A DNA stretch of 64,000 bases, taken from NCBI GenBank assembly GCA_964188305.1, contig OZ076889.1; one strand, written 5' to 3'. Positions 1 through 49,247 of the stretch are shown in pieces. The stretch's first letter is position 1, and each line of letters begins with the position of its first letter. The position numbers and the translations under genes were made by a program. The notes below the pieces were generated by a model. The model did no database searches. It worked only from the letters and a program-made list of their open reading frames with translations, and was not told where the DNA came from. This stretch comes from Podarcis bocagei. Lineage: Eukaryota.

Positions 1-33
1 CTTTTGCTGAGGTTGCCTGTGCTGTCTCTGCAG

Positions 34-123
34 ATAGCAACAGGTGTGACAAGCAGCCAGCCTATAAAACTGGTCCAGGTCCCGCAGACCACCACCTATA
101 TACCAACTACTCAACCCACAATT
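34..123 (+). CDS. ZMYND8: ZMYND8 (PRKCBP1) penultimate coding exon, 90 nt
   Basis: Acceptor tctctgcag|ATAG and donor ATT|gtaagt. Phase-1 frame reads SNRCDKQPAYKTGPGPADHHLYTNYSTHN, matching human ZMYND8 SKRCDKQPAY...PNY as recalled. Phase-0 frame (IATGVTSSQPIKLVQVPQTTTYIPTTQPTI) is also open. Convergent synteny with EYA2 as in human. Confidence 0.85.
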
Positions 124-1824
124 GTAAGTACTGCTTTTGGCATTGAAACAGCTCATTATCTATTGTGGGGGGCGGGGTTTTCTCCTGTGTTATCAGGACA
201 TGAATTCACCGGTCCCAAGTCTATATTTGCAGTATAAAACGCCTTATTTTGCCGTACAACATCTCCATTTCCCTCATGCCATATAATTTCATCATAGAGC
301 CAACCAAGGATTCAAAGACTAGCCAACATTCACACATAGTTACAGCTGCAATTTTGGGGGGGAGGGGGGGTAAACATTACTGCAAATATGGTGAGCTCTT
401 GCTTTGTGCAATGTGAACAAGTTTTATTTTAGCGCTATCCAGGTTATGCCAAACAAACCAAGCCCTAACAATATTGCATATATGTTCTGTGTTTCTGGAA
501 TTGTCGCATTGCCATTGTACGTCACGATCTTTTGCTGCTGAGATAGGAAATGTTGGCTGTGATGTAGGAATTAGGCCACTGTTCCGCATCCATTTAATCC
601 CTCAGGCTTCTTAATTTCTTTTGTGCAATCACCATGTGGTAAGCAAAAATTTAACTATTCATCCTGTGCTCTTCAGGCCCAAAAATGCTCAACAGAGAGA
701 CTGAGCTAGAGTTATTTGTAACAAAGTGAACTTGGAGCTTCTTGTTTCAAAAAAACTTTCCGCCACAATTAGAAGATGGAGGGTGGTGTTGGGATTTACT
801 TCTGCCTAAAATGATTTTACCTTAGAAAGTTCTGTTGGTTGAGTTTTACCTTGCTTTGCTGACCATGTTTGATCCCTCCGGAGCGGCATGTTTTCCTCAA
901 AATCAGATGTCCTGGTGATCCTGTTTTAATTTTTAACAATACTGCCTTAAAGCAGGAGGGAGAGCCTTGGTGATTTTTCGCCCTACTTGACATTTAATTC
1001 TATAATTTACAATGGTCAGTACCAAATGTTCTGTTTGGCCATACCAAATGTTCCATGTACATTTACTGACCTACTGTGGTCATAATGCTAACGATCCTAC
1101 TGTTTCAAGGCACAGTGCCCAAATCCACTAATTCTCTTACTATGTGAGTATTAGACATGTTTTATTAGCAACATCTGACCTAATGCTATTGTGGAATGCA
1201 TATATGAGTTTAGTAATAAATCCTAATGCCTTAAAGGGGCTCAACACATCAGCATGGTTCAATATTCATCCTACAGTTTGTGTAAAGAAAGCACTGGATC
1301 AGTTCCTGGTACATGTGATGGAAGTCTCCAGGTTACTACATTTTGAAAACACCACAATCATGGTTTGTTTTTTTAGCTGTTGTGCCCATTGTCTCCTGTA
1401 AATTGTTGGTTTGTGAGCACTTTGAAGACCAGGATTTACCATCTGATTTGAGTGAACACACATTGTTTAAACAATACATAGAGTTTGTTTTCTAGTGACA
1501 AGACAGAATATTTGTGTAATACAGAAACTTCAAACACTTTTAATCAGATTTCTACTGTTTAAGGGATTGCTTGCAATTATATTGAGAGGAAAGTTACACA
1601 CAGGTCTGAGGCTATATAGCAAGGAATAGGAAAACTCATTTTTTTGACTCGGTACTGAATATCTTGTACACGGCTCAGAGTGCTTATTATGTACAGTAGT
1701 GTATTATTATGTATTGTGCCCTTTATTTCCCGGGTAGTATCATGCTGAGGGTTTCTCATGACAGGCAATCCTACGTTTCTGTGCTTGTGGTTGCTGACAT
1801 GTGTGTTTTGGTTTTAATCCACAG

Positions 1825-1926
1825 ACCATTCCTGTAGTAGTAAGCCCTACAGCTGGGACCGTGGCAATGAGAACAGGAGTTCAGTATGTTCAGACAACAA
1901 TGCCTGTCCAAGTACGGAGAGTTTAA
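1825..1926 (+). CDS. ZMYND8: ZMYND8 last coding exon, phase-0 frame TIPVVVSPTAGTVAMRTGVQYVQTTMPVQVRRV*
   Basis: Acceptor ttttaatccacag|ACC; in frame with the phase-0 reading of exon 34-123; TAA at 1924-1926. Confidence 0.7.
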   Translation, partial: TIPVVVSPTAGTVAMRTGVQYVQTTMPVQVRRV

Positions 1927-1994
1927 CTGCTAACAAAGGAATCCAGGCAGCTGTTGGAGTATATAATCGTCTCTGTAATAGAAATGTTTTTTAA
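1825..1994 (+). CDS. ZMYND8: ZMYND8 last coding exon, phase-1 (human-like) frame (Y)HSCSSKPYSWDRGNENRSSVCSDNNACPSTESLTANKGIQAAVGVYNRLCNRNVF*
   Basis: Aligns to recalled human YHSRSNKSSWSSSDEKRGSTRSDHNTSTSTKSL; TAA at 1992-1994. Confidence 0.6.
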
Positions 1995-3228
1995 AAAATC
2001 CCCGCAGTTCATTGGATTAACCTCAAAGGTTCAGACTTTTAGCTTTGTACAGGTGTACAAAGCATTTATTACACTACATTAATGTAAAGCATTAGCGCTG
2101 GCTTTAAAAAGCTTGAGGACTGGTAAAATTCATGGTAAATCTATGCTTCTGTTGTAAATTATGTACATTTTGTGGATGATGTTAGAGTACCATCTCCTTT
2201 TTATATTTGTATTGACTTCGACGTATAAGGAGTGTTGGAAGCTGGTGAAGGAAAGGTTAAATCAGACTTGCCACAAACACCACCAAGAGAAATGGTTTTC
2301 TGGGAACTGCAGTTGCACACATAAATCAAGAATGAGAAGACTGAACCACTTGCCTTGCCTTTGGAGACGGAAAAAAACACACGCCTGCACATTGGTTTGT
2401 GCAACTGAAGCTGGAACTTGCCGTTTTAAATTTGTTAAATCAAGCATTTCCAATCTTAAGGCTCCTCGTACATTAAAGGACATATTTTGTGTTTCATATT
2501 TAAAATGAGAGAGATTGTTTACAAAATGGGGGGGGGTTAAATTTCATTCATGCTAAGAGAAAAGGAAAGTCGGAAGCTAAATATCAGATCAATAGTTCCA
2601 GAGATAATGAAAATGGATTTTGGGGCGTATGCTTCCTACTAGGTTATGTTTCAGTTGTATTGCTGCTGCTTCTTTTTTTAAGTGTCCAAAGGACTTTGAA
2701 ATTGTTTTCAAAGGGAACAAGAGCTATAGATGGAGAAGACTCTTTACCAGGAAACGAGGGCAAAGGACATTGATGCTGGAATAGAGCATGTATTATGGGA
2801 TTTTTATGTTTTTATGTAAGCATGAAACAGTACAGTATGAGAGAGAAAGTAACCCATGAAAACACTGTCTGTTACACTTAAACTGTAGTACCATTTTGTA
2901 TGTTGTGTAAACAAAGCATTGAACAAAGCAAGGTGATGTATGTATATGAGAAAATTAATTGTATTATATCATTCCAGTACATTTTGTTGTACATTTTAGT
3001 CATATTGATTTCTCCCATTGTTTATAAAGGATGCGGTTTGTACAGTCTCCAGCTAGTACACACATTAGAGGAAAGAAGAAGAAAAAAGCTAGAAGGAAAA
3101 AAAAATCAGGAGCAGAATATTTGTGAATTGCATTGTGTCAAAGATAGCCTAGCTGGCCTTATTTGTGAAGCATAATTGCTTTTAGCATATGGAAGTATTT
3201 TTTCACATTTTCTTTGTATAAAATTTGT

Positions 3229-3234
3229 ATTAAA
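3229..3234 (+). terminator. Probable ZMYND8 polyadenylation signal (ATTAAA)
   Basis: Ends a repeat-free, AU-rich 3' UTR of about 1.3 kb and is followed by a T/GT-rich downstream element (ttttttgattattgtgtttctttt). Confidence 0.55.
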
Positions 3235-4185
3235 CTAAATATCTTTTTTGATTATTGTGTTTCTTTTACTAAAGCAGGTGACGCACAATATGCTTTGGGA
3301 TTTCCCAGTTTTTTTCAGGGCTCTTTAAGTTTCTTTAATTCTTCCTTTTTTTAAATTAAACTGTTTTAGAAAAAAATGGGTCATGTTGGGTTTCCATTTT
3401 CCTTCTGAAAGCCAGGTTACATTTACATGTGTCCTTTAAAAACAACAACTCATTCTGATCCAGCTGTATTTCTCTGGTAGTTGATACTTAACTGCATCAC
3501 TACTTGGCATGCTTACTTACAGTTTTATATTACTCTCTTCACTTGTTCTGCCTAGCAATAGAAACTGTTCTGAGAGCACTGCAGCCTTCCTATTCAACAT
3601 TAGCAAATATGCAGATGTTTTCTTGTTTTCATCTGCCTCCTGGACATTGAACAGACACAGAAGAGTAAGAGGTATTTTACTTTTTATTTATTTTAGAATT
3701 TGTCAGCTGCTTGCTTTTCCGCACAGCTAATAAGTTTTGTCTGTTTGATGCTTAAATAAGGCTAAGCACATCAAATTATCTCAGGTTCCAAAATTGAGGT
3801 GCCTCTGAGGAGGACTGAGTCCCAGCCAACCTAACCTCAAACAAATGAGGTCCAGAGCAGCACCCTGGGGCAGAGAGGCTGAAGAATTTTTGCTGCTTAC
3901 TAATGCCACCTTTACTAGTTTGGTTTCTCTTTTTCTTCGTTCTCTTCTTTTCTTTTAACAAACTAAAAATCTACTGTCTGTATTTCACTCTTGCTTTCTC
4001 ATAGCTTTGGCTGGCAAGTCAAATGTTGAAAAAGAGAGAGAGAGGAGAAAAAACAAACCAATTTCAGGGTTGTCAAAGTCATCAAACTGACTTCCAGCAT
4101 CTTGGGATCTCCTAATGTGAACCTTCACCATGGCAATAATTATTTGCCACCAGAGAGCCAAGTCTGTTTCACATCTCACATCACA

Positions 4186-13751: not shown

Positions 13752-13890
13752 NNNNNNNNNNNNNNNNNNNNNNNNNNNNNNNNNNNNNNNNNNNNNNNNN
13801 NNNNNNNNNNNNNNNNNNNNNNNNNNNNNNNNNNNNNNNNNNNNNNNNNNNNNNNNNNNNNNNNNNNNNNNNNNNNNNNNNNNNNNNNNN
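13752..13890. other. Assembly gap (139 N)
   Basis: Run of n bases. Confidence 1.
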
Positions 13891-47577: not shown

Positions 47578-49247
47578 CTCTGGGAAAGAGAAGAGATCCC
47601 AGCAGACTTTAGGGATGCCAAAATTATCAATCTCTTTAAAAAAAGGTGAAAGAACTGATTGTGGAAAATATTGAGGCATCTCTCTGTTAGCTGTGGCAGG
47701 CAAATTTCTTGCAAGGATCTTGGCAAACCGTCTCTTAACTATATCCGAGGTGACCCTTCCTGAATCCCAAAATGGCTTTCGGCCTTCTAGAGGGACAGTG
47801 GACATGATTTTCACCGCTCAACAGCTTCAAGAAAAATGCAGAGAGCAAAACCAACCCCCGTATATGGGATTTATTGACCTGACTAAGGCTTTCAACACTG
47901 TAAATCGTAATGCCCTGTGGACTGTCCTTCTGAAAATTGGCTGCCCAGATAAATTTGTAAACATCATTCGGCTCCTCCATGATAATATGACAGCAACAAT
48001 CGCAGATAACAATGGCTCTCAAAGTGAACCATTCACAGTGGGATCAGGAGTTAAACAGGGTTGTGTTATTGCCCAGACTCTATTCATTATTTTCATTGCC
48101 ATGATCCTACACTTTGTCGAAGGGAAACTCCCTACCGGAGTAGAAATCATATATCGAACAGATGGAAAGCTCTTCCATCTGAGCAGGCTCAAAGCAAAGA
48201 GTAAGGTTACTGTAACTTCCTTCATAGAGCTTCAGTATGCTGATGACAACGTAGTGTGCACACGCTCAGAGGATGACCCCCAAACCATCCTAAATATCTT
48301 TGCAGAAGCTTGCAAAAAGCTTGGCCTATCACTCAACATCCAAAAAACCAAAATGTTGCACCAACAAGTACAAAATAACCCCTCTGAAACCACAAATCCA
48401 ACTCAGTGGTGTAACATTGGAAAATGTCGATCACTTCTCCTACCTAGGCAGTTATCTTTCCACAAGGGTCAACATTGATGTTGAAATCCAGCATTGCCTG
48501 AGCTCTGCGAGTGCGGCTTTCTCCCGATTGAAGTGCAGAGTGTTTGAGGACTGAGACATTCGCAGGGAAACCAAAATGCTTTTTTACAAAGCTATTGTAC
48601 TACCAACCCTCCTATATGCTTGTGAAACATGGACCACTTATAAACACCATCTCCAGCTCCTCAAAAGATTCCACCAACGGTTTCTCCAAATTTTTTTACA
48701 CATCACTTCGGAAGACAGGAGAACTAATGCTAGTGTACTGGAAGAAGCAAAGATCACCAGTGTCAAAGCAATGATTCTTCAACATCAACTTTGTTGGACT
48801 GGTCATGTTGTGCAGATGCCTGATTATCATCTTCCAAAGCAGCTACTCTATTCCGAACTTAAAAATGGAAAGCGTAATGCTGGTGGTCAACAAAAGGGGT
48901 TTAAAGACTGTCTCAAGACAAATCTTTAAAAAATGTAGTATAAACACTGACAACTGGGAAACACTGGCCTGCGAGTGCTCCGGTTGGAGAACAGCCTTTA
49001 CCAAAGGTGTCATGGGCTTTGAAGACAGTCAAACTCAGGACGCAAGGGAGAAACGTGCTAAGAGGAAGGCACGCTTGGCAAATCCACACCGTGATCAACT
49101 CCAGCCCGGAAACCAATGTCCCCACTGTGGAAGGACGTGTGGATCCAGAATTGGCCTCCACAGTCACTTACAAACTCAGTGTTAAAACTGTGTTTATGGA
49201 AGACAATCTTACTCGGCTACGAGTGATCGCCAAAGAAGAAGATGATG
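47578..49247 (+). mobile_element. RTE-clade LINE (non-BovB), 5'-truncated, disabled reverse transcriptase
   Basis: RT motifs ESQNGFRPSRGT, FIDLTKAF, GVKQGCV, LQYADD; C-terminal CPHCGRTC...H..H; frameshifts and stops near 47672, 48390, 48552 and 48927; short GAA/GAT tail. Confidence 0.9.

Follow-up and report, generated by a model that had tools for sequence, protein, structure and literature searches.

A gene whose end is open in two reading frames raises the question whether the same nucleotides encode two proteins. Such a case is found at the beginning of a 64,000-nucleotide (nt) stretch of contig OZ076889.1 of the lizard Podarcis bocagei (GenBank assembly GCA_964188305.1), the whole of which is called the window here. 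The two exons concerned very probably are the final pair of coding exons in the orthologue of ZMYND8 (PRKCBP1/RACK7), and an earlier note on this DNA had proposed that they are dual-coding and provide this chromatin reader with two alternative C-termini. Here, we describe that in this genome they very probably are ordinary, already annotated C-terminal exons of ZMYND8 that are read in one frame only; for dual coding in this lizard we find no support.

Frame 0 and the C-terminal tail of ZMYND8

The first of the two exons (34-123) is 90 nt long and begins after the first 33 nt of the window; it is flanked by ...ctctgcag on its 5' side and gtaagt on its 3' side. The following exon starts at 1825 and is preceded by ...atccacag. 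The splice junctions AG/ATAGCA, ACAATT/GTAAGT and CAG/ACCATT have the same boundaries in seven other species, and these positions are used by annotated models. After splicing, two long frames are open over the same nucleotides. Frame 0 comprises 63 codons (IATGVTSSQPIKLVQVPQTTTYIPTTQPTITIPVVVSPTAGTVAMRTGVQYVQTTMPVQVRRV, beginning with IATGV and ending with VQVRRV) up to a TAA at 1924-1926, and the frame with an offset of +2, here called P1 (the "phase 1" of the earlier note), comprises 85 codons (SNRCDKQPAY...NRNVF) up to a TAA at 1992-1994. Numerous stops interrupt the third frame, and frame 0 past its own stop reads LLTKESR. The two tails can be told apart by the peptides TGVQYVQTTMPVQVR (frame 0) and CDKQPAYK (P1). 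On re-derivation, the coordinates and both translations given in the earlier note, with stops at 1924 and 1992, were exact; its exon boundaries are confirmed by canonical splice sites and its gene call, ZMYND8, by protein matches.

The T/V/P/Q-rich frame-0 peptide, which had been described as protein-like, is indeed the tail of a real, annotated protein. Its last-exon part, 33 residues long, was scored against 1.84 billion representative proteins and matched a 1194-amino-acid protein with the same terminal peptide, plus fragments. Full-length proteins that end in the frame-0 peptide carry the domains PF00628, PF00439, PF00855 and PF24324, that is, the PHD-bromo-PWWP-MYND architecture. A word search with the tail region of isoform X6 of alligator ZMYND8 yielded the frame-0 tail, among the best 120 cluster representatives, from fishes (cow shark, sawshark, elephant shark, sturgeon, coelacanth and lungfish) as well as from tetrapods (a caecilian, many frogs and salamanders, turtles, crocodilians, birds, squamates, platypus and echidna). 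In squamate models from Podarcis, Elgaria, Heteronotia, Paroedura, Sceloporus, Salvator, Vipera and others, 63 of 63 residues equal those of the window; this applies to isoform X3 of Elgaria multicarinata (XP_063001765.1; P0030) and isoform X2 of Podarcis lilfordi (P0023), two species that also have isoforms without the 30 residues encoded by exon 34-123. The squamate matches by themselves assign the window to a lepidosaur, most likely to a squamate. None of the solved structures spans the region from the MYND domain to the tail of ZMYND8. The match of the C-terminus, the canonical splice sites and the purifying selection in frame 0 described below make it very probable that the coding region of the ZMYND8 orthologue ends with the two exons 34-123 and 1825-1926, read in frame 0. 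The product would be a T/V/P/Q-rich C-terminal tail, ending in VQVRRV, that very probably dates back, almost unaltered, to the last common ancestor of jawed vertebrates.

Selection was compared frame by frame with both exons from Crotalus adamanteus, Phrynocephalus forsythii, Gavia stellata, Xenopus tropicalis and Acipenser oxyrinchus and with the last exon alone from a second bird and from transcripts of a second frog, seven other species in total. We counted the minimum number of substitutions per frame-0 codon position and determined the proportions of nonsynonymous (pN) and synonymous (pS) differences from Nei-Gojobori counts. Substitutions at codon positions 1, 2 and 3 numbered 6, 4 and 15 in exon 34-123 (six species; p 0.016), 10, 2 and 50 in the last exon (eight species; p ~1e-14) and 16, 6 and 65 combined (p ~1e-15). 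In frame 0, pN/pS was 0-0.18 in all comparisons save that of exon 34-123 between the window and Xenopus, which is taken up below. In P1, by comparison, an exon had 0-1 synonymous and 3-23 nonsynonymous differences, since the third position of a frame-0 codon is the first position of a P1 codon and nearly all substitutions thus change P1 residues. Amino-acid identity to the window is 62/63 in frame 0 but 50/62 in P1 for Crotalus, 62/63 and 52/62 for Phrynocephalus, 61/63 and 51/62 for Gavia, 57/63 and 38/62 for Xenopus, and 54/63 and 30/62 for the sturgeon; P1 residues diverge as fast as the synonymous sites of frame 0. Moreover, P1 of the sturgeon has a stop at codon 11 (after SNRREEQPAN), and in the tetrapods for which both exons were available the P1 open reading frame (ORF) ends after 74, 83, 85, 101 and 116 codons. 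Conservation in both frames was not found: frame-0 pS reaches 0.81 in the last exon, P1 diverges and the sturgeon has its stop. Exon 34-123 taken alone does not discriminate between one and two coding frames, since its synonymous sites are constrained. As judged from the substitutions, purifying selection is confined to frame 0. This comparison ran close to the outcome that the earlier note itself had named as speaking against dual coding, with P1 unconstrained and interrupted by a stop in one lineage.

Does the openness of P1 then require an explanation of its own? The 63 frame-0 codons were resampled with random synonymous codons in 100,000 trials, with the codon choice either uniform or weighted by third-position composition. 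The +2 frame was free of stops in 43% (uniform) and 47% (weighted) of the recodings and is therefore not open beyond composition, whereas the +1 frame was free of stops in only 0.4-2% of them. A stop in +2 requires a frame-0 codon ending in T followed by one starting with AA, AG or GA, and as codons of the latter kind are few in a T/V/P/Q-rich peptide, this frame is often open. The further 22 stop-free codons of P1 beyond the frame-0 stop have p ~0.2 at the composition of the untranslated region (UTR; base counts over 1927-4000). The second open frame is at chance level and needs no explanation beyond composition. P1 would be open as a side effect of a frame-0 composition that seldom makes +2 stops and of the slow evolution of the exon and 3'UTR nucleotides, and we infer that no transcript of this species brings ribosomes into P1.

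Gene models with the P1 tail and possible routes into P1

Public gene models do contain the P1 tail. Among 316 non-therian models, 218 have the frame-0 tail and 42 the P1 tail; among the 95 squamate models, frame 0 is found in 90 and P1 in none. All 42 P1 models are either labeled "partial" (birds) or derived from Ensembl/UniProt, and 35 of them end at ...STKSL. When the bird P1 tail was compared with the whole collection of 5.8 billion clusters, 33 representatives were obtained, all of them bird entries named "PKCB1 protein, partial" or "Protein kinase C-binding protein 1, partial", plus UniProt/Ensembl-derived models of Chelonoidis and Serinus; no mammalian P1 tail was among these 33. Many of the bird and tortoise models read ...ACAVSAD/SNRCDKQ. 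ACAVSAD is the P1 translation of the last 20 nt of the intron (window 14-33), and these models hence read through the acceptor; the tortoise models additionally cross the donor of exon 34-123 (...STHN/CKYIIII). In our judgement, none of the models checked from outside the mammals is a splice-consistent P1 model. We therefore judge the 42 bird and tortoise models to be annotation errors, of which those checked read through splice sites, and from our own reading of the labels the "partial" bird models probably are projections from a mammalian protein. P1-tailed public ZMYND8 models of birds and a tortoise can mislead comparative work. For this genome the dual-coding proposal thus lacks support, since splice-consistent models from non-mammals use frame 0 only and P1 is closed by a stop in the sturgeon.

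An upstream alternative donor that switches the frame, as envisaged in the earlier note, finds no support in the 95 squamate models. Two ways of altering the transcript upstream of exon 34-123 are known from other tetrapods. Transcripts of frogs and curated isoforms of X. tropicalis lengthen the preceding exon; in the second frog species the extension has 37 nt (3n+1) and holds a stop (VRIAGR or VRIAGP, then stop), which leads to a protein without the conserved tail and turns the last exon into UTR. Bird XP_ models have an extra exon, located between the MYND-linker exon and exon 34-123, that reads KSKESVT/DPSV and stops immediately. A BLAST comparison of two squamate loci found no homologue of this bird exon, and in the squamate intron preceding exon 34-123, where a frame-shifting exon was looked for, there were only AT-rich, non-coding conserved blocks. 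Neither the bird exon nor the frog extension delivers P1. In the literature, no paper on dual coding of PRKCBP1 was found, five peptide strings from both tails matched no paper, and PMC3427357 is about a different short isoform.

The mammalian tail and the 3' end of the mRNA

The human canonical tail, ...HSRSNKSSW...LLPKESRLDTFWD with an optional insert VSKRCDKQPAY...AQKY, resembles P1 of the window (SNRCDKQPAY..., YHSCSSK..SW and ...STESL). Mammals appear to translate these nucleotides in P1, whereas in the lineage of the window P1 is unconstrained and found in no model judged splice-consistent. This would lead to the assumption that the frame differs between lineages: non-therians would read frame 0, and therians, having acquired a stop-free upstream insertion of 3n+1 nt, would read P1. 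We consider this fairly probable, and it is compatible with frame 0 being the only coding frame in the lizard. The frame-0 tail extends from sharks to monotremes, and the best 120 matches include platypus, at 215 bits, but no therian; clustering at 90% identity could, though, hide therian frame-0 isoforms behind longer representatives. The "partial" bird models stop at ...STKSL, exactly the point from which the human tail (...STKSLLPKESRLDTFWD) continues in another register, but that they were projected from a mammalian protein is an assumption. After its stop, frame 0 of the window continues with LLTKESR, and the last part of the human tail, LLPKESR, lies in this same register, from which an indel in the mammalian lineage would follow. 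Finally, the 3n+1 extension in frogs indicates that such a lengthening of the upstream exon is old, although in frogs it contains a stop. Against this it has to be said that the sequences compared are all non-therian.

With these reservations, the balance tips slightly towards a P1 that is silent in this reptile and became a coding frame in therians through a stop-free upstream insert comparable to the frog 3n+1 extension. The idea that sauropsids and mammals translate these exons in different frames, also put forward in the earlier note, fits everything found: its non-mammalian half is borne out by the use of frame 0, and its mammalian half may follow from the human tail and from the bird models labeled "partial" that we take to be projections from a mammalian protein. 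A mammalian reading in the other frame is plausible and the only part with some novelty. If true, the re-reading in therians would replace, or add to, a tail that has been kept since jawed vertebrates first appeared, and it would represent a datable overprinting event in the gene of a chromatin reader. What is learned about the function of the mammalian tail then may not transfer to other vertebrates, nor the reverse. ZMYND8 is cancer-relevant, and it is the contrast to the human tail that points to a lineage-specific switch of the C-terminal frame.

The intron and 3'UTR of the window differ from those of Crotalus and Phrynocephalus, but to very different degrees. The 1002 nt of 3'UTR from 1927 to 2928 can be aligned end to end with Crotalus (73% identity) and Phrynocephalus (76%), and 665 nt, two thirds, align with Gavia at ~80%, whereas only ~190 of the 1701 nt of the last intron are alignable to its counterpart in two other squamates. 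Since the 3'UTR aligns widely and the intron hardly, the nucleotide conservation near the stop is a property of the whole 3' end of the mRNA, and this accounts for the resemblance of P1, and of frame 0 past its stop (LLTKESR), to the mammalian protein. Of the words sampled from window 1-4000, a share of 0.54-0.63 is present in small runs, probably of RNA, and exons plus UTR make up about this share.

The cassette exon and the case for dual coding

Exon 34-123 is an in-frame cassette, as many models read ...KSKESVT/TIPVVV... instead. Of the 95 squamate models, 50 contain it and 40 lack it; the remaining ones end before the MYND domain (three), have another last exon (one) or read through the upstream donor (one). 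Forms that skip the cassette are found in birds and crocodilians, too. Inclusion or skipping adds or removes 30 residues and leaves the reading frame unchanged.

Within tetrapods, the cassette has hardly changed at synonymous sites. Its pS is 0.08-0.17; between window and Gavia it is 0.08 versus 0.33 for the last exon. In addition, the 18 nt in front of the cassette, cctgtgctgtctctgcag, are identical in the window, Crotalus, Phrynocephalus, Gavia, Xenopus tropicalis and Acipenser. A length that is a multiple of three, both isoforms in several species, and conserved synonymous sites and flanking intron are thus found together. The cassette and its 18-nt flank probably are a splicing-control element: exon 34-123 would be a regulated cassette whose synonymous sites are frozen by splicing control. 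A human "ZMYND8 exon 22" is regulated by hnRNPM/ESRP1 (PMC6140460) and a human "exon 33" of ZMYND8 by Matrin3/PTB (PMC4365034); these are leads only, as equivalence to 34-123 is not established for either. An RNA-level function besides splicing control and coding, for example as a structured element or binding platform, would also account for nearly frozen synonymous sites in tetrapods and for intronic nucleotides invariant from sturgeon to lizard, and the 3'UTR is strongly conserved as well. We regard such a function as unlikely, because the 3n length, the two widely annotated isoforms and the conserved flanks form the classic pattern of regulated exons, and no Rfam family was found downstream in a scan of 2965-64000.

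Some further observations concern the surroundings of the cassette. An AT-rich block of ~130 nt, conserved between a bird and squamates, precedes the cassette by 100-240 nt and is located beyond the start of the window. Many bird XP_ models read through the donor of the cassette (...TTQPTI/VSTISSF...), which points to retention of the intron or to an alternative 3' end past the cassette; the same read-through in the window would give ...TTQPTIVSTAFGIETAHYLLWGAGF... and a stop. Far downstream, the window contains a 261-residue ORF, probably part of a fragmentary non-LTR (long terminal repeat) retrotransposon, with a match to the reverse transcriptase RVT_1 (E = 4e-29), as well as a run of 139 N, which is an assembly gap or masked stretch. 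The positions of all features are compiled in Table 1.

Table 1. Features of the window, corresponding loci in other species (L) and gene models (P). The assignment of the exons to ZMYND8 is very probable.
Feature	Position or identifier	Strand	Basis or remark
3' splice-site region of the intron upstream of the cassette	14-33	+	Polypyrimidine/GU-rich tract plus CAG
Penultimate coding exon of ZMYND8; 90-nt in-frame alternative cassette, frame 0 IATGVTSSQPIKLVQVPQTTTYIPTTQPTI	34-123	+	AG/GTAAGT boundaries; peptide as in annotated squamate ZMYND8
Last intron	124-1824	+	GTAAGT donor, CAG acceptor
Last exon, coding part, frame 0 (TIPVVVSPTAGTVAMRTGVQYVQTTMPVQVRRV plus TAA)	1825-1926	+	Protein matches, codon-position pattern
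Conserved 3'UTR	1927-2928, extends past 2928	+	Alignment to squamates and loon
Overlapping +2-frame ORF P1, 85 codons	36-1994 (36-123 joined to 1825-1994)	+	Open; judged untranslated here
Cassette plus 18-nt flank	Window 14-123; L008:33830-33937, L009:68074-68181, L010:55304-55411, L011:52713-52820, L012:19046-19153		Loci of other species
AT-rich block upstream of the cassette	L008:33611-33745, L010:54759-54896, L009:67580-67709		Conserved between a bird and squamates
Extra exon of birds	L008:32738-32752		In Gavia begins GACCCATCAGTGTAG after a polypyrimidine tract
Frog extension of the upstream exon	L002:1-961 (also L003-L007); L011:51968-51988
Models with the P1 tail (birds, one tortoise)	P0134, P0146-P0149, P0151, P0152-P0158, P0161-P0163, P0165, P0166, P0169-P0180, P0251, P0252, P0257, P0261-P0263, P0267, P0279, P0290, P0321-P0323
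Bird models reading through the cassette donor	P0089-P0098, P0253, P0255, P0259, P0260
ORF, 261 residues, probably from a non-LTR retrotransposon	47693-48478	+	Match to RVT_1
Run of 139 N	13752-13890

Several observations weigh against a single coding frame in this genome. P1 is open in all five tetrapods examined. The exon upstream of the cassette is located outside the window, and its donor reads GTNNGT in all five other species, where a tandem donor at +4 could shift translation into P1. Between the window and Xenopus, pS of the cassette is 0.08 versus 0.81 for the last exon (Fisher p ~1e-7), and pN/pS of the cassette is 0.71 in frame 0, with synonymous change nearly absent. Low synonymous divergence of this kind could also arise from a second coding frame. 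However, the value of 0.71 is a consequence of synonymous change being so rare, and a constraint on P1 cannot explain the cassette, because a P1 reading has to run 55 codons into the last exon and is unconstrained there. The +4 tandem donor was considered as evidence for P1 and rejected, as GTNNGT simply is the donor consensus. True dual coding, by a minority isoform with a 3n+1 upstream donor or exon and the tail SNRCDKQPAY...NRNVF, therefore appears very improbable to us even though P1 is open over 85 codons, the donor and the cassette would allow it and mammals presumably use P1: its openness is at chance level, 50 of the 62 last-exon substitutions fall on P1 first codon positions, its residues diverge freely up to Xenopus and the sturgeon, its end varies or is preempted by the sturgeon stop, and squamate models avoid it altogether.

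Synonymous sites and flanking introns of regulated cassette exons typically are highly conserved, and exon 34-123 is like them in its 90-nt length, the two isoforms, the invariant flank at the 3' splice site and the low pS. CDKN2A, with INK4a and ARF, and GNAS, with XLalphas and ALEX, are the classical dual-coding loci. The tail exons of ZMYND8 are similar to these in that an exon is open in two frames and that alternative upstream exons are possible selectors of the frame. In CDKN2A and GNAS, however, both frames are translated in one organism and both are conserved, whereas in the tail exons of ZMYND8 described here this applies to frame 0 only.

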